A stretch of 64,000 nt of DNA from NCBI GenBank assembly GCA_964188305.1, contig OZ076902.1. One strand, written 5' to 3'. Below the pieces are notes generated by a model. That model saw only the letters and a list, made by a program, of their open reading frames with translations. It had not been told where the DNA came from and did no database searches. Positions within the stretch are counted from its first letter, which is position 1; each line of letters starts with the position of its first letter. This document shows positions 3,041 to 62,010 of the stretch, piece by piece. Source of the DNA: Podarcis bocagei. Lineage: Eukaryota. The translations under genes and the position numbers were made by a program.

Positions 3041-6000
3041 GTAAGTTGGACCTACTGAAATGTCATAGCCTGCTAGGTCAGTCCACAACCTCCCCCTGAA
3101 TGAGGACACTTGGAACCATAAAAATTGAAAATGCAGGCCTGCAATGACACCTTCGCAGACCTTCCCAGGTAACCCTGGTCTGAGAGAGACCTCTAGAAGT
3201 CTTGGCCGTGTCGCTCAGTTGCCATCCTTGAAGAAGCTCAAAGTTATAAAGCACATTAAAAAAAATAATTATTTTTTTTAAATTACATCTACATTTTAAA
3301 ACTTTGTTATTGCTAAAAAAGAAAAGAATCTCCCCAGCTACCCTTCCCTGCCCTTTCAGGTCAAAGATTAGATGGAAAGAAAGAAAGGGAAGATAGTACT
3401 GGAAATAAAAGCAAATTGGTACCGGGGGTGGGGAGCATTTAGCTCCAGGGTTGGAAACATTTGTGAGCACATCTGGAATGTTGAGAGTGCCTTGGATCCA
3501 TATTTTTCTACCATGTTATTGATGGAAAACACTGGCACTTTGGGGGCCATTTTGCCCAGGATGCCTCACTCTGAGCAAAGACCCCTGTGGCCCTTTCTCA
3601 AAGTGTCACAGGAGGAGGAAAGCCATGCAGAGGCATTGCCAAGGCAAGGCTTCTGTGGATATCTGGTAGTGGTGGGGGAGGCATGTTTGAGTGCCAATTT
3701 GCTGTGACTTCCACCTGAGACAGTTGTCTCAATTTGCCTTATGGTTGGGCAGGACCTGCTTTCACTGACCTAGAAGACTCACTGCATTCAGAAACTCAGA
3801 TATATAAACTAGGTGGCAAATGGCTCCTTAAACCAAAGTTACAGTCGCCAAAACAGAATATCTAGTTGCAATTTTGGGTCAAGACCCTGCTTAAAGTCAT
3901 ATTTTTCAAATGATGGACTGGCTGGGATTGATTCTCAGCTAAACATCTGGCTAGTTCAGTTGACAACCTTGAGCTAGGTTAAGAGCTTTGAGAACTTAAA
4001 GAAGAAAAGTCACTTGATCCAGGGACAGTCCACATATTTACTGGCCTATTATATGACCTCTTTTTCTTAATGGTGACTGTTCCTGCTCGGTCTGCACAGA
4101 AAAAACATTTAGGTTCCAGAAATTCATTTTGATTGTGCAGATAATATATAACAGATAGAATTCTACAGGGTGGGGTGAAATTCTACAGGGTAGTGTGTGA
4201 AAACAGTCCACATCCAATGATTCCCAGGCATGCACCTCCAGATAGTGGAGATCTCAAGTGAAGATCTCATCCTGGTGCCTAGGCATCTTCACTTGATCAC
4301 AAGTGGTCGAAAACCAGGTGCAAAATGCAGCTAGTGCCTGGTTAGTTTCAAGCACTGCCCATGAGTGTCCCACTTTAGCAAGCGTAATGCTGCACTCTGA
4401 TCCATTGAGAAAATGAGAGTGGAGTGTGGTTGTAGCATGTGGAAGAAGAATTTCACAAGGCCACAGGGACAGTCCTGATCTTCTGACCGTGTAGCTTCAC
4501 GTGCTCATCCTGGCAAGAGGGCAGACTGATGTTGGGCTGGCTAGTCCAGAGAGACACTAAAGGGGAAGCCCCTCTTTATTGTTCTCTTGAGGCAGGTTTT
4601 GGGAATCAGCTGCTTCTAAACAACGACATAAAGGGGCACTCGGAAAGTGGAGTACTTTCCTCTCAGTCCTATTTAACCGGTTTCCCAAACAGCGCATAGC
4701 AGTGGAGCCCCGTTGAGTGACTGATTTGCCCACGGTCCCATTTTCAGGAGGAAGTGGGCTGAGGCCCAGTGGCAAATCCTGTTGCCGCCGGGTGTGTGCT
4801 TGTAACATACCTTGAGAACATAGGGAAACCATTAGAATATGATTCACATCAGGTTGGCACGTTTGGACCCCACCATCCCCGCAACATGAGTTGCTGTAGT
4901 TTTCGTACACCAGTTGGCACAAACCTTGGTTTTTTTGAGCCTGCATTAGCCCAAGGGAGACAGCCAGTGCAGGCATGCAGTTGCTCTGGGATGCAATCTG
5001 ATGCAACTTTTCATCTCCTCTCTGGAGCCCACACGCAAAATTCCTGAATGGTAGCCAAGTTAAAGAATACTTTGCTCACAAGATGTGTGACTCATCAGCA
5101 TTTCCTTTCCTTTCCTTTTTTGTTTAAAGGACGGATTGGAAGCATCTCCTCTTAAGACCAGGGAGCGGCTTACTCTCCTGAGAACCCTTTTGGCAGCTCT
5201 GCTCGCTCTCATAAATTGCTTTTCCCCAAGTGAGGAAGAATTTTGCCACTTGGCCTCTGATTGTTCTTTGGCGATGGCAGAGTTTTCAGGGAGAAAGGTG
5301 TTCCATGGGAAGTGAACTGAGTCTGGGATGAATTGTTTCTGCAAAAGTAAAAACACGGGGAGCTTTTAGCGGTGCATTAACCCGAAAACATATTCTCCTT
5401 TTGTGAAAGATATGCAAATTGGAAATTCCTCAGGGTTGCATTAAAAGGAAAAACAAACCAAAAACCATGCACTTTGAAATCACATCTCCTTAAAAAAGAT
5501 CCTAACATTGAAATGACACATTATAGACACAGACATTCATAGAAATAAAAATGCCAAATGTTTATCAGTCAGCCTTCTGTTTCCAAAGGCAACTATGTCA
5601 GCATTTCACAAACACTTGAGCAGAATTCTGATATTTGAAATGCAAACCACTGTATTTTTAAGTTATTGATGAGGATAAGTCTCATCAACATGATATTTAT
5701 GGCTCCTGATGAAGAGTGAGTGCCGGGGAAGCTCTCTTTTCTTCGGTAAAATGAGCAAATCTAAGGCATGCGCTTTCCACGTGTTCACTTAACACTGATA
5801 TGTTGGAGGTATCCCCAGCATTTATAGGTAGGGCTGGGAGAGAGCCCTGCCTGACACCCTGGACAGCCTTACTGATCAGTATAAGAGACAGTGCTGAGCT
5901 ATTTGGACCAGTGGGTCTGTATCCGGATAAGGCAGCTTCCCATGAGATAGAGCTCATCCACAAATAGCATCACAAACGCAGACCAGAAATGCTGTTCAGT

Positions 6001-6229
6001 GCAGATAATTGCGGGGTGGGGGGGTGGAAACAGGACTCTTCGCTCGAAAGTAAGGCTGTTGGTGTAGATAAAGAAATATTGCTTCATTGATTTTATTTGG
6101 TTATCAGATTTATTACCTGCCATTCACATTAAGATCACAGGGCGGGTTGCAATGGCACAAATAATGCAATTCGAAACCAAATAAAAACCTGATAAATTAA
6201 CAATTTGTAGGTAGATAACAGAAATACTT

Positions 6230-6830
6230 TTCAGCTGTCAAAGGCCAGGATAAAGAGAGATGTCTTCAGCATTCAATAAAGCAGAGTAACGATGACACTA
6301 GATGTAGCTCTACAAGGATGGAATTCTGTGGTTTTGGCACTGCCACAGAGAATGCTCTCTTGCCGGCTCCCAGCCTCTGAGTCTGGGAAGATGGCAGGGC
6401 AACTGTGAGGGCCCCCTTCTGCTGATGTTAATGGCTGGGAAGGTCTGCAGGAAAGGAGGTGGTCTCTCACATATTTGAGACCTTAAGTCAGTCTTGTCTG
6501 TGAACACCTTGAATTGGGCTTTGAAACGAACAGGCAACCAACAACTGCTGCTATAAAACAGGAGTTCTAGATGGCACCCCAGCCTGTAACTTGGCTGCTG
6601 CATTCTGGACCATGGGACAGTCCCACGTAGAGCACATTACAATAATCCAGAGGCTGGAGTACATTGGCCCAAGTCAACCTGTCCAAAGCAGGCTGCAGCT
6701 GGCAAGCTAGCTGGACTCACTTGCAGCCACCAAGACCACCTGGCCCTTGAATGTCAAAGTTGGGTTCCAGAAGTACCCCAGGTCTCTGCACCCGCTCCTT
6801 CCATGGGAGTGCAACCCTGTCCAGAGTGGG
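6230..6830 (-). mobile_element. Degenerate L2-like LINE 3' fragment
   Basis: Resembles the L2 RT C-terminal and 3' region; boundaries approximate. Confidence 0.45.
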
Positions 6831-6995
6831 ACTGCGAGTTTTACCAGTCAGCAGATTTGTGGAGAGCTAATAATTAAATGATTTTTCTGAAGGGGGAAAA
6901 TGTGCATATGTGGCACAGCAGCAGCTGGTCTCAGGAGTGGTCTATCTTCCCCCTAAGAGAGGATGGTGTCTTGCCACTGGAGAGTTTTGCAAGTA

Positions 6996-7233
6996 CAGTC
7001 GCACCTTGGAAGATGAATGGAATCCGTTCTGGAAGTCCATTCGACTTCCAAAACGTTTGGAAAGCAAAGCTCGGCTTCGGATTGGTTGCAGGAAGGTCCT
7101 GCAGCCAATTGGAAGCCCCGTCGGGACATTCGGATTCCAACGTTTGCAAACTGGAACACTTACTTCCGGGTCTGTGGCGTTCGGGAGCCAAAACGTCCAA
7201 GTACCAAGGCGTTCGGGATCTAAGGTACAAGTG
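6996..7233. mobile_element. Tc1/pogo(Tigger)-type MITE
   Basis: Degenerate CAGT..ACTG TIRs, TA flanks; related to the 15910 copy. Confidence 0.7.
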
Positions 7234-8763
7234 TACTTCTGTTAAAAACTGTGTGCGTTTTTGTGCCCTCTGAAAAGCGTTTAATAAGTGTCGTCTATTA
7301 AACCTTGAGGCCCTCCTTAAAAGCTGGGTTTTTTTCAGACTGTCGGAACGGAACTTCATAAACGGTTTTGCTTGCTGTGCGAGAGGGCGGAAAAAGCTGC
7401 CGTGGGTGGATGTGACCTCCATCCCAGTCGGACAGAGGTTGTGATGGTGCAAAATGGGGCCCTGACCCCTCTCAGGACGTCCAGAGCAATGTACCCCCCT
7501 TGGCCCTACCAGTGTTTGCTGCTTGTTTGGGGTTGTGCTGGAGAAGTTTTGGGCCTGCACACCTAATTATTACAATGGTACAGTACCCTCTTGTGGCAGT
7601 ACAGTTTACTGCTGCGCTGGCAGTATAGAGGCTTGTTGAAAGTAGGTCAGCAGAGGGCAGTTCTATCAGCCAGTATGTGCTGCACACACTGAAAATAAAT
7701 TAAGAGCTTTAGGACCACTCCTAATTTGCAGGTTTTAGTTACATGCGGCTGGCTAAATCTGCAGGCCTTTTATCGTGAACGTGCCAGGTTGAAGTTAGTG
7801 GATGTAGTGCCCTGTGGCTGTACAGTATTACCATTCAGAGAGTGTTTCTTTAATAGATTATGAACCTGACAATGGAATGTCGAGGTTAGGCTTGGTTTAT
7901 TTTAATGTCAGTTTGCTCCTCTTTCCTCTACGAAAATGACCTTTGCACATTTCTCTGTAATCATTAGCACTGGAAGCTTGTGATACTTTGAGGGTTTTGT
8001 TGTTGTTTTTTTTAAAAAAGAGAGAAATTCTCATCAGCTGCAGAGAGGTATCGCTGCTCTAAGTTCCAGTCCAGCTACCAAGCTCCCTTTAACCATGTCA
8101 ACTCATTTATGGCGATGGTCGTGTTTTGAGCTATCGCTTTGGGCTGTAGCAGAATGGCACTGTTCCACAAGCATATAAACCCCTTCACCAAAACTGAGCT
8201 TGGCTGGCTTTGGAGTGAGTCTTGAGATTGCTCAGCAGTAGTTATTACCTCACCCTCTTATCCCTGCCGGAAAGAATAGCTTACCTATAGCCAGTTGTGG
8301 CTGGTGCCCATTGGGACCGGTGGGAAGGAAGGCAAGTGCCCAGCAGGTAGTGGAACCAGTGCCAATGACAGGCAGAACCAGCTAACTGTAGCCTTGTCCC
8401 CATCCTCCTCCCTGCTTAGTTCTGTGGGGCAACTCTGAGGCTAAGGAGGAGGAAGCTGACAAGCATTGCCACCCACTGATTGTAAGGAAGAAGGCACGGC
8501 CAGGTGGTGGGGATAGCTGAGGTCAGACCGAAGTTGGTGTGGCAGTGCCCCCATTCACCTTAATGGACCAGCCTCTGCTGCCTAAAGCCGCAAACGGAAT
8601 TCAAAACAGAGGGAAGATTCCAAGCGGAGATTTGCGGCTCACAGGTCACACTCTCCCCTGTTGTGCTACGTTGCTTCTGGAATGTGGTGAAGGGTGCAGA
8701 CCCCGGTGACACGGCGCAGTCTTCTACGATCACTCACTTGCTTCTTCTCTCTTCCATCCCCAG

Positions 8764-8858
8764 CCCCAAAAGCCGACTGATCCAGTTGAAGAAGGAAAAA
8801 TTGGAGTACACTCCTGGGGAGCACGAGTACGGATTGTTCCCGGCACCTATCCACGTGG
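8764..8858 (+). CDS. ASH1L: ASH1L exon ([32 protein letters not shown])
   Basis: cccag|C acceptor, G|gtgagt donor. Confidence 0.96.
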
Positions 8859-9954
8859 GTGAGTGGGTTCTCTGTGCATGCTTTGAATGAGCCCTGCATG
8901 CGTCCTCTCAGCCAGAGGAAGTGAATGGCCCCCAGGTTATCATTTGGGTACTTGCGGGGCAGGGAGTGGGTGCTTGAATCGACTCCCAAAGGAGGAAATT
9001 CCTAGTATGGGTTCAAGATCCTTGTTTCTGGGCCAACGGAGAGCCACTCATTAGGGGAGGGAGGTCGTGAAACCCTCCTCTAAAATGCTGTAGGTCATGT
9101 GCAGCCGAGAGGGATTTTAGAGACTGCATTGTAAAATAGCTCATTTACTTTCCTGGCTTGTCACTTTAAAGTCCTAGGGGTGCACCGCTTTGCTTTTTTG
9201 GGAGCAATGCAAGCCCATACTAGTCCAATATTTGTGTGCTTGGATTTGTGCTGGAAATAAGATTGACAGTTGTACCATGTGCTGTGGAGTTCAGCTTTCC
9301 CACCCCACTCCTGGTCTGCCGCAAGACAGTGGCTGAAGTTACCTTGCACTTTTCAAAGCTTGCTTTGCAGGTGTGACAGCTGAAACTTGGGGACATTTTG
9401 CACTGTAGTGGTGATCTTTTTGTTTTCCAATGCATGTCTTATCAATAAAAAAATTCACTGTGGTGCGAACAAATTTCTATTCTTAAAGTGTGGCCCACAG
9501 AAAAAAGTTTGAGAACCACTTCTATAACGGGGTAGCTGTGCTAGTCTGTAAAAGTGAAAAGGCAGAAAGTTCAAGCATCTCGCTTGTTTGTGGAGAGACT
9601 CGAGGAGAAAGGTTTATTTAGTCCCTTTAACTTGAGCAGCCTTGTTAGTGATCCAGCTTGAGCGTATTCCAACCCCAGGGACCGTTTTTTCCTTATTTAA
9701 GGGTTGAGACTTGTTTGTGCCTTGGGCTTGCGCTCCTTCCCCGCCCTGCCCCCCCCCAATCCCTCGCCAGGTCACGGCCCTCCAGTTTATTTGCGCCAGG
9801 AGACACAAACAAACATGTCCTATTAAGATAAGGCAGCTTTAATGACTCTGCCTGGCGTAAAGGCAGAGCAGTCTCGCCTCCCCAATCATGTTAGGAGGAT
9901 TATTTCTCTGCTGGGCTAACTCCTTGTCTGGGTGCCTCCTTTTATTGAGGTGGG

Positions 9955-9985
<31 letters not shown>

Positions 9986-10522
9986 CACTCCCTACTCTCT
10001 GGGCTGGCTGCCAGGCCCTTGAAAGAGCCTTTTGTTTTAGCCAGTGAGGTCATAGAAGTGAAAACAGATTCCCAGTGGACTTTGCTGCTTCCTGGAACTC
10101 GCCAAGCACAACTTGAGGCTTTGAAAAATAAGAACAAATTTTAAGAGCAAGTTGTAAAGACAACATGACAGCTGCTCTTCTCTCCCCACCAACACCCCCC
10201 CCCCGCACAAAAAAATAGTTTTTCAGAAGCGAGAAGAGGTGCCTGCAGCATCAGAGGAAAGCCAAGGCCAGGAGCACCCTGCTGGCCCCTCTGGGCTTTG
10301 CTTGCCTCCCTTTGCTCTTGCATCCTAACAGAGGGTGAAAGATGGCTCTCTCTTCTTCTTAAGCTTAGCAGTTTGTTTTTGTTTGAGCTCATTTGCCTTG
10401 CTTATCTTGGCATGGTTCAAACACCGTGAAACTCCTTGCCACCTAATGCCTGCTCAGACAAGCTTACATGTGTCTGTTGTCTTGAAAACATTCAGGTTAC
10501 AGCACTGGTGAACCTTCAGAGG

Positions 10523-10672
10523 AGGAAGCTGGGTAGCTCAGTTGGTTGGAGCGTGGAGCTGATGAATGCCAAGGTTGCAGGTTTGATCCCCGTAAGGAAC
10601 AGCTGCATATTCCTGCAGTGCAGGTGGTTGGACCAGATGATCCTCAGGGTCCCTTCCAACTCTATGATTCTA
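10523..10672 (+). mobile_element. tRNA-head / CR1-tail SINE (Squam2-like)
   Basis: A box gtagctcagttgg, B-box-like ggtttgatccc, tail ggtcccttccaactctatgattct; related copies near 43560(-), 51365(+), 57850(-). Confidence 0.75.
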
Positions 10673-10905
10673 AGTTAGGAGCTGTAATCTCTGTTATCTT
10701 TGAAGGTGGGTTGTCTGGGACTTTGAGGTCTGAGATGAGAATGTCCTGGTTGGGGACTAAGGCTGCGTGCACAGCATACATTTAAAGCACATTCCCCTCC
10801 ACCTCAAAGAATCCTGGGAACTTAGTTTGTTCAGGGTGCTGTGGATGGTAAACTACGGTTCCCAGGATTATTTTGCTGGGAGGGAGGGAGAATGTGCTTT
10901 AAATC

Positions 10906-11372
10906 ACAGAATTGTTGAGCTGGAAGGTACCCCAAGTGTTCTCTCGTCACAACCACCTGCAATGCAGTCATCACAGCTCAATAATCCTTGACAGATGATC
11001 ATCCAAGCTCTGTTCAAAAACCTCCAGTGGAGGAGACTCCACCACCTTCAGAGGTAGTCAGTTCCACTGTTCAGCAGCTCTTACCGTCAGAATCTCCTTT
11101 CAGGACATTTGAATCCATTGGTTTGGGTCTTACCTTCTGGAGCAGCAGAATACAAGCTTGCTCCATCTTCTGTGTGACAGCTTTTCAGATATTTGAAAAT
11201 GACTATCATGTCACCTCTCAGCCTTCTCTTCTCCAGCCTAAACGTACCCAACTCCCTCAACCATTCCTTAGAAAGCTTGTTTTCCATATCTCTTATCATC
11301 TTGGTCGCCCTCCTCTGCACACCCTCCAGCTTGTCAATATCCTTGAGCTGTGGTGCCTGGAACTGGACACAG
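10906..11372 (-). mobile_element. CR1 LINE 3' fragment
   Basis: QRRATKMIR..LRELG..LEKRRLRGDMIVIFKYLK, typical CR1 ORF2 C-terminus, plus CR1-type tail. Confidence 0.85.
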
Positions 11373-11392
11373 CAGTGTTGAGCACAGCCTAC

Positions 11393-11641
11393 CAGGGGTC
11401 AGCAAACTATTTCAGCAGGGGGCCGGTCCACTGTCCCTCAGACCTTGTGGGGGGCCGGACTGTATTTTGAAAAAAAATATGAATGAATTCCTATGCCCCA
11501 CAAATAGCCCAGAGATGCATTTTAAATAAAAGAACACATTATACTCATGTAAAAACATGCTGATTTCTGGACCGTCCGCAGGCTGGATTTAGAAGGATTG
11601 GGCTGGATCTGGCCCCCCGGGCCTTAGTTTGCCTACCCATG
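11393..11641. mobile_element. hAT-type MITE
   Basis: caggggtcagcaaact / agtttgcctacccatg ends. Confidence 0.7.
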
Positions 11642-12621
11642 GCCTAAGCCTTCCCAGTTCAGGATAGTGTCTCTGCAACTTTCAGGACTCTCTTCAGCGA
11701 CAGTGGGGAAAGGATAGTGGCACCCGGGCGGCATGAAGTCTCTGTATCTGCCAGGCTTGTTATAAATAACTATGGGTCGGTCCTCCTGTCTTGTCTGATC
11801 AATACAGTGCATCATATATTATTTTCCCTGGCTTTGCGAGCTTTCAGTTCAAGTGCCACTTTCTGGCAAGCAGCCTCTGGAAACGTGGGCTGGAGCAGTG
11901 GAGCACGCTCTCCAGGTCTTAGATTGCGAGATGGCTGCTCATAGCCCAGTCATTGCTGAACAAAGTGCATTTGCTCAGCCTGCAGGAATGTGGATGTTGG
12001 TTCTCAGTCCAGGGCTCAGCTGCTCACAAAACGGCACCTTGGTCTGTCAGAAGCCAGCATGGGCCATAGAAGAAGACCAGCCCTATGAAAAACTAACTCT
12101 CAGTGCTGTTGTGGTGTTGTTCTGTCTAGTTTAGAAGCAGGTGTGGATATCCTCTTGCCCTCCAGATGTTGCTGAGCTACAACTCCCATCAGCTTTAGTA
12201 TGCATGGTCAAGAATGTTGGGAGTTGTAGTTCAGCAACATCAGGACGGCCAAAGGTCCCCACATATACTTCAGGGGGAAGATGGCTGCAGAAAGGACATG
12301 ATAGAGTAGGGCCGAGGAACTTTGTGGTCCTCTAGACATTGATGGACTCCAATTCCCATCCGTGCCAGCTAGCAGGTCCAGTGGCCCAGGGATGATGGGA
12401 GTTGCTGGCTCATCAGCATCTTGGAGGGCTGCAGGTTCCCCAGCCCTACAATTAGAGCTTTACAAAACCGCACAAGGCAAAGGGAGAACTTTGTTTTCCC
12501 TTCTCTCACATATAGTGCCTGTTCTTTAGGGTTCCCCAGCGAAACCTGCAGGGGGAAAGTGCTTATTGACATTGATGTATAGACTTGGCTGCTGCCAGAG
12601 ATAGCGATGGCTCCCCACTCA

Positions 12622-13086
12622 CCGTATTTTCGCCCTATAGGATGCACTTTTTCCCCTCCAAAAATGAAGGGGAGATGTGTGTGCGTCCTATGGGGCGAAT
12701 GCAGGCTTTCGCTGAAGCCTGGAGAGCGAGAGGGGTCGGTGCGCTCTCACTCTCCACGCTTCAGGAAGCTATCCGCAAGCCGTGGGAGAGCTGCGCGACT
12801 TCCCGCCAGGCTCCCAAGGCTTGCGGACAGCAGCCTGCAGCCCAAAACCCGGGGAGCGCGCCCTGGACTTTGGGCAGCTCTCCGCAAGCCTTGGGAGCCA
12901 GGTGCAACTTCCCGCCGGGCTCCCAAGGCTTGCGGACAGCAGCCTGTTCTGGGGGCTGGGGTCGGGGGAAGCTCGGGCTGGGGGGAATTTAAACTTTTTT
13001 TCCTTTATTCTCCCCCCCCCAAAAAACAACAACAACAACTAGGTGCGCCCTATGGGCCAGTGCGTCCTATAGGGCGAAAAACACGG
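12622..13086. mobile_element. pogo/mariner-type MITE (CCGTATTTT TIR) with internal repeats
   Basis: ccgtattttcgccctataggatgcac / gtgcgtcctatagggcgaaaaacacgg. Confidence 0.82.
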
Positions 13087-13644
13087 TAAATTGAAAGGGT
13101 GGAATAGGAGAAACTGCAGAGATGGAGAAGCCCCCCCCGGGCTGCTAGCTGGGCTGTTCTTATGAGTACATGGGTCCTTGCAAAGGATTATAAAAATCCA
13201 CAGGGATAGGCTTATCGGTGGCCATTTGCTCCAGGGCTAAAAAAGCATCCACATTCAGAGACAGCTGAATAGCCATTGGCTAAGGGACAGGAGAGGACTG
13301 TTGCCTTGATGCCCTGCGCTTTCCCAGAGGCGTCTGGTAGGTCACTGTGTGAGGGAGGATGCTGAAGCAGGTAGTCCCGTGGTCTGATCCAGCCAGGGCC
13401 GTTCCGTTCTTCCACTTTTCCTCTTCATTTCAATTAAGAGCTGCACTAGGACGAACTTCACTGGTGCATTTTACACCTGGTTAATTAGCATGTGTGGCAG
13501 GGACCTTTGTATTTTCTGCCTCAGTCGTCAAGACGTCTTTGGTCTGCTTCTGCCAGTCAAGCTCTGTTCATGGTGTGTGTGTTTAGGAAAGAATAAATGC
13601 ATGACTTTTGTATTTCTTCTTCCCTCCCCCTCCCCCCACTGCAG

Positions 13645-13718
13645 GGAAATACCTACGCCAAAAGCGAATAGACTTCCAGTTGCCTTATGACATTCTTTGG
13701 CAGTGGAAACATAATCAG
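13645..13718 (+). CDS. ASH1L: ASH1L exon ([24 protein letters not shown])
   Basis: tgcag|GG acceptor, CAG|gtaggg donor. Confidence 0.96.
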
Positions 13719-13795
13719 GTAGGGGACTATCTTTTTTTAAAAAGTCACATCCTTCCAAGGCTGCATTCCAAGATGCTTGAGAAGAATCAAATGGT

Positions 13796-13797
<2 letters not shown>

Positions 13798-13852
<55 letters not shown>

Positions 13853-13863
13853 TGCTGCTGCTG
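13798..13863. repeat. (CTG)17 CTC (CTG)4 trinucleotide repeat
   Basis: Direct reading. Confidence 0.97.
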
Positions 13864-14493
13864 CTCACTGATACTAGCTGTGCATTCAGGAGTCTTTTGC
13901 TGATGTTGCAGCTGAGGGAGGAGGCTGGGTGGGTGGGAATCCTTGAATATATATTTAATGCAGACAATTTCCATTGCCTCCCTCCATCCTTCTTCGCCTG
14001 CACACACATGCACCCACAGAGAGAGCGCTGCTTTCAAACTAGCAGCAGTTTTGCTTCTCAGAAAGCGTCCACCCTTAATCCTACCAGGGACTCTTATTCT
14101 GATAGCGCCTGCCTGCTTCTGCTTCTGGGATCTTGTGTTGTTTTTTTGACACGCCTCTGGAGAATTCAGATGTTCTGCCAGCAGTGCTGAAAAATTTCAG
14201 GCCTTATTTTTCTTGGACCCAGTCCCGAGCAAAGAGAGTAGAGGTTTGGTTTATTTTTGTTATTGTTATTATTATTATTATTCCAACTAGAAGCTGATGT
14301 TTGGGGGTCAGAAGGAATGCACTGAATAGCCCGCCTTGGGTTCTTTCCAAAGAGCTCCCTCATTTGTCCATGGGGTAGGCTAAAAATAGGGTGGTGTTCC
14401 TTCTGACAAAAGGTTTCCACCAGAGGTTTTGCAGTGGGATTTTGCCTATCCTCTGCTCTTACTCCAGATCAGTGGACTTGAGTGGGCCTAAAC

Positions 14494-14631
14494 CAGGCTT
14501 CCTCAACCTTGGCCCTCCAGATGTTTTTGAGACTACAATTCCCATCATCCCTGACCACTGGTCCTGCTAGCTAGGGATCATGGGAGTTGTAGGCCAAAAA
14601 AACTCCGGAGGGCTGAGGTTGAGGAAGCCTG
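14494..14631. mobile_element. Palindromic hAT-type MITE
   Basis: TIR caggcttcctcaacct; 8-bp TSD gcctaaac. Confidence 0.9.
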
Positions 14632-15909
14632 GCCTAAACCCAAGACCCACCTTTGACTCACAACCTGCAACATGGGACCCACTTTCACATTTTCACTTTT
14701 GATTTATACATAATAATGCTGATGCACATTATTAATCCTAAAATGGTGATGCACTGAGAAACATACCTCAGCATTACTACTAAATGAAAAGCAGCGCTCC
14801 AGCTCAGGGTTCCAGCCAGCCCTGCCCTCTCCCACTGGGCTCCACACCTGCATGGTGGGGTTAATAACACCAGCTTCCCTTTGAGGACTGTTTTTAGGAT
14901 TACTGAGGATTAGTGGATGTGCAGCACTTTGAAATCCAGGGCTGCATACACACCCCGTGCATTTGAAAGCACATGGCTCTTCCCCACAAAGAATACCATG
15001 AACTGTAGTTTGTTGAGGGTGCTGGGAATTTTAGCTTGGAGTAAACTGCAGTTCCCAGGATTCCATGTACTGGGCTGTATGTATGCACTCCAGAAGGGAC
15101 AATGTGTGTTATAATTAAGCACCTGCTTTTCCCCGTTGCCCACTTTATTTAGCAATATGCTATAGAAACAAGGAATTGTTCCCACCCACCCCATTCTGTT
15201 CAGTGATTCAGCCCCCTCTCTAAAAAATACATATTTTTACTAATTGCAAAGCTTGCGTGGTTTACAGTTTACATTTCCTCATTTCACATTCCTAACATGT
15301 TGCGGGGAAACTCCATAATGAGATCTACAGGCGTCTTTAAGTATTGTCAAAAGGAGCAGATAGTACCTGGTTCCAAGCACGTCTGTCTCTGACAAAACTG
15401 GTTTTGGATTCTGCTGCTTCTTTTTAGAGGGAATGATGTCTTTGCCCCAAAATAGGCCGTGCTGATTTTAGTCAAGAAGCTGCATATTTGCTGGATTCTT
15501 TGATATGGCGCTCAAAACGAGTATAAGCGTCTGTCTATTTTTTGCTGAACTGCTCCAGAGGTGCTTTATACTAGGGTTGTCTAAAAGCCTTCCCCATGTA
15601 GACAAAGCTGCGAGGCCTTGGGAGCCCCATGGACACTCTGGGACCACCTGGTCCCGCAACATTTCTGAAACTGAAGTTAGTATAGAGCTGGTTGCTCTCT
15701 TGGATTGGGGAGCCCTACCGTTAAAATAGGGAAATGAACATTGTGGCTTGGGTCCACAGATCCTCTTCAGTTGGCATTGAAGTCTGTTCCACTCCCGTAG
15801 CTCAGGGCAGAGCATGCACAATCCCGGCATCTCCAGGTAGGGCTGCCTGAAACCATGGGGAGCTGCTGCCAGTCAGTGTCCTAGATGGACCCGATGGTCT
15901 GACTCAGTA

Positions 15910-16151
15910 CAGTGGTACCTTGGTACTCGAATGGCTTGGCTCCCGAACAAATCGGCTCCCAAACGCCGCAAACCCAGAAGTAAGTGTTCCTGTTTGCAAA
16001 CGTTTTTTGGAAGCTGAATGTCCAACACTGCTCCCACTTAAGTGCAGGAAGCTCCCGCAGCCAATCAGAAGCCACGCCTTGGTTTTTAAATGGTTTCAGG
16101 AGTCAAACGGACTCCCAGAATGGATTAAGTTTGAGAACCAAGGTACCACTG
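15910..16151. mobile_element. Tc1/pogo-type MITE nested in a SINE
   Basis: TIR cagtggtaccttgg / ccaaggtaccactg, TA TSD; interrupts the SINE tail gactcagTA..TAaggcag. Confidence 0.88.
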
Positions 16152-16956
16152 TATAAGGCAGTTTCCTGTGTTCCTAGAAGGGCTGCCTCTGAGCGTTGCC
16201 CGAAAAATGATGGCAACCCAGAGAAGCTCTTCCACCTGCGCAATGTGTTGTGCAAAACTTTGCACATACATAATTTTATTTGTAGATCGCCTTTCCACAG
16301 TTCAAACCATGTTCAAGGCAGCTTACAACATGAAAAAAATTCATGACTACGACATAACGAAAGTGGTCATAAGCAATAAATAAAACGTTTTAAAAATACA
16401 CAACCAAACTTAATGGTTTCCACGTGAATCACAACAAGATCTAAAATAAAGATATAAAAGAATAACAGCAACACCTCTCTCTGCAACAGCAACACCCCAG
16501 CTCAAGAGTCTCCCCAGCAGTCTCAGCTTTTTGTAGCTGGAGTCAGCCAGGGCTCTCCCCTCCCAGGCCTGGTGGAAAAGGCCTGCCAGGCAGGGAGCAT
16601 GTCTTCCAGGACTCCCATGCCCTTTTCAACATCATCTTAATGGCCCCCTGGATTCTATGTGCCACATCTTTGTATCTTCTGTTTTCCATCACAAGTGTAA
16701 CACACTGAACAGCGCTAAGAAATGTTCTCCTTCCCCTCGTGGCTCTTTGGATCCAGGCCAATAAATGTTTACGTTTAAAAACACACACAAAAAAAAATAA
16801 GATCAAAACCGTCCTCTGGTGCTCTTGTAACAAAGGCTTTTCTTCATTAGGCTCTGTCAGGCATAAATCAAACCTTCCTTTCTGGGAAAAATGCAAATTT
16901 TTATTCTGCTGTTGTCTTGCAAAGCGATAAAGAACACTTATTTCTTTTCTTTCCAG

Positions 16957-17002
16957 TTGTATAAAAAGCCAGACGTCCCGCTTTATAAAAAAATCCGTTC
17001 TA
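16957..17002 (+). CDS. ASH1L: ASH1L 46-nt exon (LYKKPDVPLYKKIRS)
   Basis: ttccag|TTG acceptor, A|gtaagt donor. Confidence 0.95.
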
Positions 17003-17259
17003 GTAAGTAGCTTTGTGTTTATATAGCCCTGGTTTTATGGTTTCCTCAATTGTGGAGCCTTGCCAGCCTTTTATCTCCACTTGACCGCACCCTCTTTGAC
17101 CTCCTGGCAGTAGCCCCGCTCCTAGGCTGCCGCCTTTTACTCTTTTCTCTATGGACTGAGGTCAACGGGGTGGGCGAGCCGAGAGAGAGGTTTGTAGACT
17201 GGGAGGAGCTCTGTTTCAGAAGCTGATAGATACTTTTCACTCCTCCTTTCCCTCTGCAG

Positions 17260-17368
17260 ACGTCTATGTGGATGTGAAGCCTCTTTCTGGCTACGAGGCC
17301 ACGACCTGCAACTGCAAGAAGGCCGAGGATGGCAACAGAAATGGCTGTTTGGATGACTGCTTGAACAG
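17260..17368 (+). CDS. ASH1L: ASH1L exon, start of AWS domain ([26 protein letters not shown])
   Basis: tgcag|AC acceptor, AG|gtgagt donor. Confidence 0.96.
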
Positions 17369-17974
17369 GTGAGTTGCAGGGCCGCAACATAATTAATGCT
17401 GCAACCGAAGACATGTCCGTGCGCACACACAGAATCACTGGAAATTAAAGAGACCTGCTTCTCACAAGTAGCAAGGTGAGACAGCCAGCATGCATTGGGT
17501 GCACTATTTTCAGACTACATAAAAAGCCCTGGGTGTCCAAACCCTCACTTCAGCCTTAACTTAAATACTGCTAAGCCCTACTCACGGTATAATCATTGAG
17601 ATTAATGGGCAGGCTTAATTTAGGTCCGTTAATTTAAGCTGGGAACATTTTTGAGCTGGATACAAAACTGCATACCCGGCCATGGCTAATTGTCAGGGTT
17701 TTGTTTGAATTCAGTCCAACAACAACAACAACAACAACTTATTTATTATTTTTATGCCACCCATCTGGCTGGGTTTTATAATTTCCAAAAAATTACAAAA
17801 CCACAGTAAAACATCACACATCAAAAACTTCCCTACACAGGGCTTCCTGACCTACCTCGCAGAGTTGTTGTTAGGGAAATGTGGGCAGCAGAGAACCATA
17901 TGTACGGCGCTGAGCTAGTTGGAGGGGAGCGTGGATAAAAACGTGGTTTTTTTTTTAATAAACCCTGAAAATGA

Positions 17975-18537
<563 letters not shown>

Positions 18538-18800
18538 TAAGGGCTCCAGAGGGGGTCGCCTTGCTAGTTTTCATTGCTTTTGCTATGGCAACAACAGAGC
18601 CTTTTAGTACCTTTATAAAACTGATGGCCTACGCTTGTGTGCATCCGCGTGTACAGCACTTGGTTTATTTTAAAGTGCTGCACACAGAACCCTAAAAGAA
18701 CAGTGTCTGCCTGAAGGTTGGGGTCCCTCTTCTTTCTCCCCTGCCTCACTCTCTGCCCCAGTTCTGAGTAGAGCTGTCAACCAGTTTAGAGGGTGTAGAC

Positions 18801-19062
18801 CGGGGGTAGGCAACCTAAGGCCCATAAGCGGCTCATGGGGGTTTAACTGGCCCATGAGCTGCCCCCGAACTGAGCCGCCCTCTCGGCGAGTCCCCGCGTG
18901 CTGCGCTAAACCGGCGCAGCGCAGGGACTCACTTCCGTGGTGCCGGAAATCATGTCTGCGCAGGCACCAGAAATTGTGGGGGCGCATGCTCACAATCCGG
19001 CCCACAGAGGGATCTCCGCTGGAGTGAACCGGCTCAGGCGAGGTAAACCTTGCCGGCCCCTG
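18801..19062. mobile_element. hAT-type MITE
   Basis: c(g)ggggtaggcaacc..ttgccggcccctg; 8-bp TSD gtgtagac. Confidence 0.85.
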
Positions 19063-19262
19063 GTGTAGACGGACACCATCTCCCATTCCAGCTGGTCATC
19101 TTAAGAACAGTTGTGTCACTTTTTAAGATCTGATGCCTGCTGCTCTGTCAGACCCAGGGAAGCTGTGGTTACAAGCGGACTGAGCCACAATTCCACCCCT
19201 TTCCTGAAGCACTGTTTTTTTTGGGGGGGTGGGGGGGAGATTGGTTTCCAACTGAGGTATAA

Positions 19263-19538
<276 letters not shown>

Positions 19539-20067
19539 TAGTCCCTCCTTATTGGTACAAGTTGGAGGCACAAATGTATGAGATGCCCCGTGAGATCACT
19601 TTGATCACCTGGGAAATTCAGTTAATGCACCCTGCAGACTTTCATGGAACGCTTGCCTAAAAAGGGCCCCTCAAATTATAGCAGCCAGTATACCAAGACA
19701 CCTCATTTAAGCAGATGTAGACACCCAAGATACCCAGCTTGACCCCGCCGTTGGCCCTAACATCTGCTACTGTCGCCCTGCCAGGAGCAGGCGGTATGGT
19801 GGAGTCAGGGAAGGGCAAAGGTGAGGCAGAGGTGCTCACCCAACAGCAGCAATGGCAGAAAGCTTCTCACCTGAGAGAAGGAGCCCCAGTTTGCCCATAT
19901 ACAGAGTGGGCAGGCCAAAAGTCCAGGGAATTAGAACACCTAGCACCATAAGACATGCCTCTTATTTGAGCACAGTAACAGGATCTTAGCTCACCAGAGA
20001 GTGGCCATGAGATCCCCACATAATCCTCCATGCGTAAAGGATAGATCCACTCAGGTTGTCAAATTGA

Positions 20068-20547
<480 letters not shown>

Positions 20548-57356: not shown

Positions 57357-58691
57357 CTGGAAGAAGATGGGACAGAAAGAAGGGAAGTCAACATATGGAG
57401 GACAAGAAGGTATCTAGTTTCTCTGTGGATGCCAGGATTTTCATTTATTTATTCCAGTTATTAGCCAAGCCCTCACAAAGTGAAACGAAGAAAAAGAAAT
57501 CTTTTTTTAAAACACACACAGAGAGAGAGAGTATGAAGTATTGGGCAGATTCAGACAGTCGTGGCTTGAATTAGATCACCTAAACCCTAATAATAATTAT
57601 AATAATAATAATTTATTTGTACCCTGCCCATCTGGCAAGGTTTCCCCAGCCATTCTGGGCGGCTCCCAACAGAATATTAAACACATGACAAGACATCAAA
57701 CATTAAAAACTTCCCTTTAGGAAAGGGAGAAGTGCAGGTCCTGGATCTCAGCTGAAATGAAAATCCTGTGCCCCTCCAGGTATTGCTGGGATCCAGCTCC
57801 CATCAGCCCCAGCCAGGATGGTCAGAGATGATATACACCTGGGACTGTTCAACTGGTGCAACATGAGACTCTCCATCTCAAGGACATGAGTTGAAGCCCC
57901 ACGCTGGGCAAAAGATTCCTGCATTGCAGGGGATGGGAGTGCATATCCCTTGTGGTCCCTTCCAACTCTATGATTCTATGAATATATGGACCAAGGGAAC
58001 CTTTCAGTGATGGAACAGCCTCAGAGCACTCATCAAACCCAGGTTGGTGCTTGCAGACCAGACCTGGCACTCAGATGTTGGGGAGCAAGAGGGTTGCTTC
58101 TACAGATGTTTTGAGAGATCGTGCTTTGGCATGACAACAAGGAGGGATCCACCTTACTCAGGCAGATGTGCGTCCCCTCCCCGTCACTCTTCCTTTCCCA
58201 CACATCTCCCATCTCCCTGCTCCCCCCAAAAGCAAGATACCTAGATCATTTCGCCACCAGCCCCTTGTGGAATGCCACTTAAAACCAGAGCTTAGAAAGG
58301 TTTTATGATTATTATTAAATGAACTTGTTCTAGTTGAAGATGTCCACACACACAAAAAGGAACTACATGCCTGTTCAGGTTCATCCTTTTACAAAACAAA
58401 CTAGTTCAGTTCTCAGTTTGAGTCCATTCAAGTTATCCACATCAAAAAGAGAGAGGGAAAAATCAACATTCAGAATGTGGCAAGCTGCAGTGCTACGATA
58501 TAGAACACACTGTACTTTCAAAGATGAAGAAAACATCAACACACAAAGCAGAATGTGAATGGTTTCATTTACTTTCCCCAACAATATATATATATATATA
58601 TATATTTGCTTTCGTAGATTTTCACGGGTACAGGAATGCAGGTTTTGGTGTCTTCGGGTGTCTTCCCGTGTAAGAGTTGGGGTGTCTAGGC

Positions 58692-58725
58692 GACGTTTCG
58701 ACGAGGTCTCACTCGTCATCTTCAG
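58692..58725 (-). ncRNA. Minimal type I hammerhead ribozyme motif (left pLTR)
   Basis: Minus strand CTGAAGA-T-GACGAG-tgagac-CTCGTC-GAAAC-GTC. Confidence 0.75.
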
Positions 58726-59603
58726 GCTGGTGCTTTCGGCTTCTTGTTACTGGAACAGAGCAGGATCTCAGTGTTTGAGTTCCTATAAATACTGTTGAGG
58801 GGGTGTGGTGTATAGCATCCAACGTTCTGGGCAGAGAGGAAGTTCCCAGGTTAGTGTGCCTTTTCTTCTTTTGTTCATTAATTACTTGAGGGATATCTTG
58901 AGTGATTTCTTGAGTGATATTCTGAGTACCACTTAGGAGGGTCATTAGGTGTGGATTAGTTGCTAAAGCTTTCGTGTCTTGACCTCTTGAGCTTGTGAAG
59001 AGTTTTTCTGAGAAGATGGCTGTACTGCAAATAGTTGTGCTCTGGCTTGGCTTCGTGTATAGGGGCGAGCTGTGGTTTTGTGCCCTGTGCCAGCCAGATC
59101 TGTGTAGGGATTGCAGGGGGGTGCAGCATCCGGAGGTGCCACTATGGTTTGGCTACTGGATGGTGTCTGTAATTTATCTGTGGAGAGGGTCTGGGTTTGG
59201 GTCTGGTGTGGTTGATTGGAGATGGCGTTCTGTGTGCGTTGATGGCGTTGATTGGAGATGGCGTCCCTATACACGAAGCCAAGCCAGAGCACAACTATTT
59301 GCAGTACAGCCATCTTCTCAGAAAAACTCTTCACAAGCTCAAGAGGTCAAGACACGAAAGCTTTAGCAACTAATCCACACCTAATGACCCTCCTAAGTGG
59401 TACTCAGAATATCACTCAAGAAATCACTCAAGATATCCCTCAAGTAATTAATGAACAAAAGAAGAAAAGGCACACTAACCTGGGAACTTCCTCTCTGCCC
59501 AGAACGTTGGATGCTATACACCACACCCCCTCAACAGTATTTATAGGAACTCAAACACTGAGATCCTGCTCTGTTCCAGTAACAAGAAGCCGAAAGCACC
59601 AGC

Positions 59604-59637
59604 CTGAAGATGACGAGTGAGACCTCGTCGAAACGTC
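59604..59637 (+). ncRNA. Minimal type I hammerhead ribozyme motif (right pLTR)
   Basis: CTGAAGA-T-GACGAG-tgagac-CTCGTC-GAAAC-GTC. Confidence 0.75.
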
Positions 59638-59674
59638 GCCTAGACACCCCAACTCTTACACGGGAAGACACCCG

Positions 59675-59812
59675 NNNNNNNNNNNNNNNNNNNNNNNNNN
59701 NNNNNNNNNNNNNNNNNNNNNNNNNNNNNNNNNNNNNNNNNNNNNNNNNNNNNNNNNNNNNNNNNNNNNNNNNNNNNNNNNNNNNNNNNNNNNNNNNNNN
59801 NNNNNNNNNNNN
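59675..59812. other. Assembly gap (138 N)
   Basis: Run of N. Confidence 1.
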
Positions 59813-60049
59813 CGCACCAGACCACAAGACGCACCTAGTTTTTGGAGGAGGAAAACAATAAAAAAAATATTCTGAATCTCAGAAGCCAGAACAGCAAGAG
59901 GGATCGCTGCGCAGTGAAAGCAGCAATCCCTCTTGCTGTTCTGGCTTCTGGGATAGCTGCGCAGCCTGCATTCGCTCTACAAGACGCACACACATTTCCC
60001 CTTACTTTTTTGGAGGGAAAAAGTGAGTCTTATAGAGCAAAAAATACAG
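59813..60049. mobile_element. Same MITE family as 52221; left end hidden in the gap
   Basis: Near-identical to 52243-52477. Confidence 0.88.
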
Positions 60050-61348
60050 TATATAGTATATGTATATATGTATGTATATGTATATGTACACAGACACGCT
60101 GTATATGCGCCAATGAAGCTGTGGGCAGGAGGCATGCAGGTATGGTTTCCCATCAGCAGGAGGATGAACTTTAGTGGTCCCTCTATAGCTCTTTGAATTG
60201 CACCCTCCTTGAAGGAGCTCTCCCCCTGTATTTTCCCGGCAAGGTATATATCCTGACTTAGGCAACCAGTCTGGACTGGAGATGATCAGAAACACGCGAC
60301 TATTAGCCTCCTCTCAGGGTGGTTAATTCTTTTTCTAGCACAGGTGGGGGAAACCTCCAGTTGTTGCTGGACTACAACTCCCATCATCCCTGGCCATTGT
60401 TTACACTGGCTGGGGCTGATGGGAGCTGGAGTCCAACCAAGTTATTTGTCAAAAGCATTTTTTACCCAGCTCTTCAGCCCAAAAACACCTCCCAGAGCGG
60501 GTTGCAGTGATCAATAATAAGAGAGTCTAGAGAGCATTGGTTCCCAATGTGGCTGGTACCACCTCCTGGGGGGCAGTGTGATTACTTGTGGGGTGGGTGC
60601 TAAGAGGCAAGAGGGCAATGTAAATGACGATCAGATTTCGAAAAGCTGGTATCACTGGATGAAGTTCATCTATTTAGTTGCTTTAATTAATCTAAAGACA
60701 GAGACCAATTTGCTATGTTCTGGACCCCCCCATGCAGGTCACCAGGGCCCCCCCCCCGCTCTGTTCTGTCCCCCCATCCTGTTCCACCCCTTTTTGCGAT
60801 GTTTTCAGGGCACTTCTGGGTTCAGCGCAATGCGCATGTGCGCAATGGCACACATATCCCCTAAAACAGTCGCTGCCTGCAAATAGTTTTCATTGGATTC
60901 TGAATGAATGTGCAATTGGTTGTTACAGTTTTGTATTTCACTGTGTTATTATCCCCCTTAGAGGGCCGTGCAAATCGCAGTTCTGCGTAATGCTTTTTAG
61001 AGATGGGGGGGGGGACCACTGGAGCTGAGTTTACAGAACCAAGGGGCCGGTGGCACAAAAAGGCTTGAGAACCACTGGTCTAGAGGACCTCGAGTTCCCC
61101 TCCCAGTTGCACACACCTGATGCCAAAGGGCAGGAATAGCCGTACCCACAAGAAGCTGATTGGATGAGGCCAGAACGGCAACTCGCACAGAGTTGCAACG
61201 GGCAGCCTCTGTCTCTGTGCGGACAGCTGCTTTGGCCTCACAGCCTTCAACCAAATCCCTCAAGGAGGCGCACAGTTTGGGGAACAGGTGACGGAGGCAG
61301 GGAAGGTGGGAAGGAGAAGGAGGGAGAATGAGGGGAGAGGCGGCTTAC

Positions 61349-62010
61349 GTTGCTTGGGAGCTCCCGGCTCTCTGGCTTCCATACTGCCCCAGGGCACTCT
61401 CCCGAGCCCTGCTCCAGCCTGGCTGTCAAGGGGGGCGCGGCGGGCTCCAAACGGCCGCTCGGGCACCTGGCGGGGTGGGAAAGCTAAGGCGGGGAAGGTG
61501 CGGCTGCGGGGGAAGAGGGGTGAGAACAGCACAGCCAAGTCGGGGCTCTCCAGGAAAGGCAGGACGCTCCTGGCAGGGGGGGAGTAGGCCCCGATGGGGG
61601 AGAGGCGGATGGGGAGCAGCTCCTCGGGCGAGAGGGTGCCCAAGACCTGCCCCTGCCGCCCAGCCAGGAGGCAGACCTCCTCGCAGGACAAGGTCTTGAG
61701 CCTGGGGCAGAAGGCCGGGGCAGGAGGGGCAGGGGAGCTCAGCCCCACACTCTCTAAGCCAGTGCAGAGTGAGGGGTGCAGGGGTGCCGGGCCGTCCACC
61801 ACAGAGAAATGGACCAGGAGAGGTGGGTAGGGCAAATTTTGAGGTCTGGAGGAGCGGGCAAGGAGGGCGTCAGCTGCAGGCCAGAGCGAGGGCAAGGGGG
61901 CCAGGAGGTCGTGGCAGCAGGACCAAGGAGCGAAGCCAGTGCAGAGCGAGGGATGGATGGATTTTGGGGGGGGGGAGCACGTGAGGTCGACAAACCAGTG
62001 AGAAATGCAT
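61349..62010 (-). CDS. RUSC1: RUSC1 probable alternative 5' coding exon (..IRLSPIGAYSPP..SPDLAVLFSPLFPRSRTFP..); 5' end uncertain
   Basis: GC-rich open frame; strong donor C|gtaagc in phase with the next exon; motif resembles a recalled mammalian RUSC1 isoform-specific segment. Confidence 0.65.

Follow-up and report, generated by a model that had tools for sequence, protein, structure and literature searches.

Insertions of Penelope-like elements (PLEs) are marked by strong 5' truncation, an inverted 5'-truncated neighbor and a one-sided tail of 30-40 bp (Evgen'ev & Arkhipova 2005; Craig et al. 2021, PMC8557442). PLEs are biased toward microsatellites, and their structures trouble short-read assemblies (Craig et al. 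2021, PMC8557442). Their minimal hammerheads have been defined by four traits, including the catalytic boxes, a G10.1-C11.1 pair, and a palindromic segment at 15.2-16.2, and dual minimal hammerheads on opposite strands, 100-700 bp apart, have been reported (Cervera and de la Peña).

One such element is Poseidon_Ac (PAc), a Penelope/Poseidon-clade PLE of the green anole, Anolis carolinensis (Frangieh et al. 2024, PMC11167929). When its consensus is joined head to tail, it reads CUGAGGA-U-GCCUGC...GUGGGC-GAAACGUC (PMC11167929). Two internal RT start sites bound an optional tail of about 34 nt (nt 85-119; starts at 111-118), and the targets are AT-rich (PMC11167929). The purified PAc protein cleaves and extends both target strands in vitro (PMC11167929). 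PAc is the closest described relative of the element we describe here.

We analyzed a long inverted repeat in the window, by which we mean the whole 64-kb stretch of DNA under study. From left to right, the locus consists of an (AT)11 microsatellite, a tail, a 630-nt antisense copy of a PLE, a 27-nt filler, a sense copy that is 410 nt or longer, and an assembly gap (Table 1). Direct comparison of the two arms found exact reverse complements over 410 nt with 0 mismatches, which bears out the mismatch-free repeat proposed by an earlier sequence-only reading; an exact inverted repeat of this length cannot be due to chance. Beyond the 410 nt, pairing resumes after one mismatch (59065, G versus A) with two further matches, and a repeat search placed the inverted arms at 58655-59067 and 59262-59674. 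The center without pairing is thus 194-200 nt long. What had been described as a 200-bp spacer is indeed unpaired but consists of 173 nt of element sequence plus the junction filler. No further copy of the element was found elsewhere in the window.

Table 1. Features of the inverted PLE pair and its surroundings (positions in the window).
Feature	Position	Strand	Basis or remark
(AT)11 microsatellite, AT-rich insertion target on the left side	58584-58605		Sequence; other family copies also adjoin (TA)n (34 contigs, 4 runs)
Optional tail, about 28-30 nt	58606-58635	minus	Left copy ends about +112 to +114 nt past the element's AUG
3' part of the left copy, unmirrored in the assembly since the gap truncates the right arm	58636-58654	minus	
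Left arm, tail of a Penelope-like element, sense on minus	58655-59064	minus	Repeat search and direct comparison
Minimal hammerhead motif, left copy	58689-58725	minus	C3 at 58725, AUG at 58719-58717, predicted cut after 58692
5' continuation of the left copy, which is the longer one; makes up most of the spacer	59065-59237	minus	High-copy family depth
Junction filler, 27 nt, between the two 5'-truncated copies	59238-59264		Partial re-copy of 59204-59228; depth dip
Right arm, second 5'-truncated copy, cut by the gap	59265-59674	plus	Repeat search and direct comparison
Minimal hammerhead motif, right copy	59604-59640	plus	C3 at 59604, AUG at 59610-59612, predicted cut after 59637
Assembly gap, 138 N	59675-59812		The right target junction, like the 3' end of the right copy, is hidden here

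The right arm stops exactly where the gap begins, and the gap is the only run of N in the window. The length of 410 bp is therefore a lower bound, set by the assembly rather than by biology. The stretch that we compared with public contigs ended at 59674, before the gap.

Directly to the right of the gap, at 59813-59960, lies another repeat, a hairpin whose 35-nt arms (59876-59910 and 59920-59954) are 94% complementary, so that the gap has repeats on both sides. This hairpin scored below threshold against several miRNA-precursor models (mir-3156, 45.6 bits versus a gathering score of 76) and is probably transposon-derived. The mir-5408 model matches a further hairpin at 60368-60435, within 60354-60440 (52.4 bits versus a gathering score of 90), which has a related copy at 57773-57816; the two look like a squamate repeat that is also the source of annotated miRNAs.

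Each arm carries the same 37-mer, CTGAAGATGACGAGTGAGACCTCGTCGAAACGTCGCC, which reads as RNA CUGAAGA-U-GACGAG-UGAGAC-CUCGUC-GAAA-CG-UC. The strands on which it lies show that the left copy is in sense on the minus strand and the right copy on the plus strand, with both 3' ends pointing outward, as the sequence-only reading had stated. Searches with Rfam covariance models returned no hammerhead match (over 4 kb with E up to 1, and over 135 nt with E up to 10), so we assessed the motif from its sequence by published criteria. All four traits of Cervera and de la Peña can be read at 59604-59637 and in the mirror copy. The start codon of the element lies within the hammerhead, where stem II begins: A9 and G10.1 with an extra U between them form the AUG; the predicted cut falls 25 nt past it. 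The palindromic 15.2-16.2 segment is ACGU, by published criteria the basis for action as a dimer. When two hammerhead segments were cofolded without constraints, the dimer helix at ACGU was not recovered, a 4-bp helix being too weak for such a test. Helix I has two clear pairs, and because of this and the silence of Rfam we call the structure a hammerhead motif rather than a proven ribozyme.

We compared the locus with contigs assembled from four public runs. Across the arms, the summed depth of these contigs is 1e5-1e6 versus 13-70 in the unique left flank (10^3-10^4 times), and it is as high as in the arms over 59065-59237 (1.8e5-1.1e6). Depth sums do not equal copy numbers, and we therefore say only that the family to which the arms belong is very abundant. 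Past 59237, the family goes on with other letters in all four runs, which places the 5' truncation of the left copy at about 59237. Most of the spacer is thus the same repeat as the arms, and the left copy is longer than the right. The filler that follows repeats part of the adjoining sequence in direct orientation at 88% identity, which looks like template switching, and the depth bin that holds it (59232-59287) shows a dip of about ten-fold.

The same contigs hold more than 50 other head-to-head junctions that join left-arm to right-arm coordinates on one strand, so that the joined element copies are oppositely oriented. Their breakpoint pairs vary, which indicates that head-to-head pairs are common in this family; the locus itself likewise shows 5' truncation with an adjoining inverted copy. 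Among the contigs listed, none bridges the filler or joins both arms to unique flank, and so the reads give no confirmation of the inversion junction here.

In run X1/X3, which bears the same species label as the run that best contains the stretch, the sequence at 58114-58253 is represented by two haplotype contigs, one identical to the window and the other with 6 substitutions and 1 indel. The variants of this second haplotype are those found in run X4, which carries another species label. The sharing could reflect ancestral polymorphism or introgression.

Contigs from all four runs also define where copies of the family end. Most copies stop at 58636, about +84 nt past the AUG, and in 34 contigs this end abuts (TA)n. 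The left copy runs on to about 58606-58608 (about +113), carries a tail of 28-30 nt, and then meets (AT)11. These two observations identify (TA)n as the target and not as the element's own end, which overturns the earlier view that the element itself terminates in (TA)n. The tail form is multi-copy, since a 60-nt contig of run X4 spanning 58619-58678 has a depth of 360 versus 17 in the flank. The left copy thus bears the classic one-sided PLE tail. The family thus has 3' ends at internal RT starts with an optional tail, and it meets AT-rich or microsatellite targets both on the left side of this locus and at many other copies; the right side is hidden by the gap.

The reading we favor, and hold with good confidence, is that the two copies are a real pair, produced when a Poseidon/Penelope-clade PLE retrotransposed in a single event into a (TA)n microsatellite, probably within an intron of RUSC1. 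The GIY-YIG endonuclease of the element would have cut both strands of an AT-rich target, and each 3'-OH would then have primed reverse transcription at one of the internal starts, about +84 or about +113 nt past the AUG. Synthesis of each cDNA would have gone back past the hammerhead motif and ended early within the upstream region, after 630 nt on the left and after at least 410 nt on the right. Joined head to head through the re-copied filler, the two cDNAs would give an inverted repeat with outward 3' ends. Purified PAc acts on both strands of its target, by cutting and by extension, and inward priming of two cDNAs at a single break is thus a direct mechanism. The anatomy, the abundance of the family, its usual ends and the recurrence of head-to-head junctions are observed; priming on both strands, a single event and the age are inferred. 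Both arms would derive from one template at one time and so would have been identical at the start; since then they would have gained no measurable divergence.

The insertion is probably young. At an assumed mutation rate of about 1e-9 per site per year, the lack of any difference over 410 nt would point to an age below about 4 Myr, provided that the arms have not homogenized each other and were not collapsed in the assembly. This part of the sequence-only reading holds up, as does its assignment to a 5'-truncated, head-to-head Penelope-like insertion, while the separate non-autonomous element that it proposed is not shown. The copies are dead-on-arrival truncated tails of a very abundant family, and neither is mobile because they contain no RT or EN. 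The assembly gap was likely caused by the hairpin structure, probably in combination with a further (TA)n tract.

An assembly artefact would account for several of the same observations. It supposes one PLE copy, or a cluster built in some other way, with the second arm added when an assembler or gap-closer turned back through the collapsed high-copy repeat at a contig end. The halt of the right arm exactly at the gap fits this account, as do the lack of a bridging contig among those listed and the difficulty that PLE structures pose for short-read assemblies (Craig et al. 2021, PMC8557442). The excess of family depth over the flank makes for ambiguous paths, shared graph nodes could inflate the identity of the arms, and perfect identity is what a collapsed graph gives. 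However, a fold-back is recognized as a palindrome at a contig end with no center or an adapter-sized one; the contig end is present here, but the center measures 194-200 nt. Such an asymmetric center, of which a simple fold-back would lack even the shorter 194 nt, is made of 173 nt of family sequence and a specific filler, and it excludes the simple form of the artefact. At 59512 the two arms share a T in place of the G found in essentially all aligned contigs, so the arms were not simply built from the majority path. Head-to-head junctions are, moreover, real and common for the family in four independent contig sets. We therefore regard an artefact as unlikely.

Alternatively, the hairpin as a whole might be mobile, as a non-autonomous hairpin or a retrozyme-like PLE derivative that is copied as such rather than formed during insertion. 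Animal retrozymes have been reported as non-autonomous PLE sequences, which lends this idea some appeal. Against it, the inverted junctions in the contigs show many breakpoint pairs rather than one fixed unit, and depth in the filler bin falls about ten-fold below that of its neighbors. Retrozymes are also tandem arrays of short units with a type I hammerhead (the non-LTR retrozyme pattern), and the locus has no such array, only two inverted copies. We consider a mobile hairpin highly improbable. A DNA transposon of the fold-back or MITE type, bounded by terminal inverted repeats of 410 bp, is barely credible, for although the long inverted arms and short center resemble one, the ends obey PLE rules (internal RT starts, optional tail, (TA)n), the arms hold an oriented hammerhead and AUG as in PAc, and the 5' truncation points vary among copies.

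We also considered what the locus might encode. An open frame ending in KTRKL* had been noted through the spacer; it is present as a minus-strand ORF (58963-59334), and because of the palindrome it is mirrored on the plus strand (58995-59366). Two further frames, at 59252-59620 (plus) and 58712-59152 (minus), run from upstream into the hammerhead, the longest reaching 147 codons. With 66% A+C, the sense strand is expected to hold long open frames; the 147 codons of the longest frame were reached in 58 of 2000 shuffles. Pfam found no domain in any open frame of the locus, including the KTRKL* and 147-codon frames, so the existence of the KTRKL* frame stands but coding by it is not shown. The same search agrees with the earlier statement that no RT or GIY-YIG domain is present, and this is expected of copies truncated upstream of the hammerhead. 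The plus-strand frame at 59252-59620 stops at a UGA in loop II (59618-59620), and the next frame begins at the AUG 8 nt earlier.

We also searched the 147-aa frame that ends in the hammerhead against 1.84 billion representative proteins by profile search (HMMER). There were two matches only, and the search linked no RT or EN to the family. One match (P0002) is a 268-aa gene model of the translin family (PF01997) whose last 95 residues are 95% identical to the translation of the PLE tail. Either a repeat copy was annotated as the last exon of this TSNAX-like gene or it was truly exonized there; no contig record encoding P0002 was found. The other match (P0001, 2657 aa) was rejected as a relative, as it is the translation of a 249-bp satellite and a spurious match summed from many weak ones. 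At the DNA level, its locus (L001; GCA_031841145.2) does not resemble the element, and it lacks a hammerhead motif. That locus (4929-20422; CM063346.2) is a 15.5-kb array of the satellite, with 62 units that are 99% alike, called as a protein.

The position of the insertion was judged from protein matches in the window. On the minus strand, the RUN domain of RUSC1 gave the best PDB matches, at about 54.4 kb (chain residues 10-36) and at 45.0-45.9 kb (RUSC1 residues 145-193, E = 1e-10, better than RUSC2/iporin). The insertion lies upstream of these RUN exons. ASH1L-like SET-domain exons are found on the plus strand at about 18 kb. On the other side of the insertion, a proline-rich minus-strand ORF at 61263-61895 gave no usable match in a protein search and may be a large 5' exon of RUSC1. 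The insertion site is thus likely to be within a RUSC1 intron, as had been proposed: the downstream side of that claim has direct matches, while the upstream exon is a matter of inference.

Folding of the minus strand, which is the sense strand of RUSC1, pairs the arms completely, and necessarily so. A stem of this kind in RUSC1 pre-mRNA would be a physically plausible substrate for ADAR or Dicer. The same idea would fit thousands of similar hairpins in the genome equally well, and none of the public runs that contain the stretch is recorded as RNA. A bolder version holds that the stem of at least 410 bp is transcribed in RUSC1 pre-mRNA and that it and thousands of sister PLE hairpins feed the lizard dsRNA pathway, by ADAR hyper-editing or endo-siRNA, with the hairpin's own hammerhead locked in the duplex. 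We think this quite unlikely. If it held, PLE hairpins would rank among the main sources of endogenous dsRNA in lacertid lizards, and one uncharted until now. The filler is specific to this locus and so offers a unique tag for asking whether the hairpin is edited or diced in vivo.

By itself, the locus carries little weight, being one of very many copies of a known insertion type. The architecture has already been described for PLEs, and its novelty is low. Its modest use is as a clean natural example: a single locus displays both PAc RT start sites along with the priming on two strands known from in vitro work. It also carries a warning: this assembly tends to break at such hairpins, and arm lengths that adjoin a gap should therefore be taken as minima.

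PAc and the present element both have a minimal hammerhead of the form CUGANGA-U-G...C-GAAACGUC, in which A9-U-G10.1 makes the start codon, and the cut falls 26 nt past the AUG in PAc versus 25 nt here. Insertions end at about +85 and about +111-119 in PAc versus about +84 and about +113 here, and the targets of both are AT-rich. By eye, the tail peptides are also alike (ESLRQHI in PAc versus ENLRKQI here). The loop and helix II sequences differ; by eye, the changes from PAc to the present element are paired (C-G to A-U, U-G to G-C, G-U to A-U, and C-G to G-C), so that the helix stays intact. Upstream of the hammerhead the two part ways, as at least 512 nt here have no visible similarity to the 126-nt untranslated region or the EN domain of PAc. 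Unlike in PAc, the open frame runs into the hammerhead loop, and no RT or EN was found linked to the family.

The locus resembles PLE insertions in general in its 5' truncation, adjoining inverted copy, tail at one end, microsatellite bias and the trouble it gives to assembly. It differs from them in having no full-length unit and no direct pseudo-LTR, only two inverted truncated tails.

Two better-known inverted arrangements of retroelements invite comparison. In L1 twin priming, reportedly set out by Ostertag and Kazazian in 2001, two cDNAs are said to start from opposite strands of a single target and to be joined by microhomology, giving an inversion. The product is said to be an inversion with a deletion inside one copy, with a poly(A) end. 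The origin that we favor for the PLE pair is similar in that two cDNAs would be primed on opposite strands of one target; in contrast to L1, the result here is two overlapping copies of one 3' region and hence a true long palindrome. Inverted Alu pairs in primate introns can form long dsRNA in pre-mRNA and consist of two independent, diverged insertions. The PLE pair is, like them, an inverted retroelement pair, apparently intronic, that can fold into long dsRNA, whereas here a single event would have given perfect complementarity.
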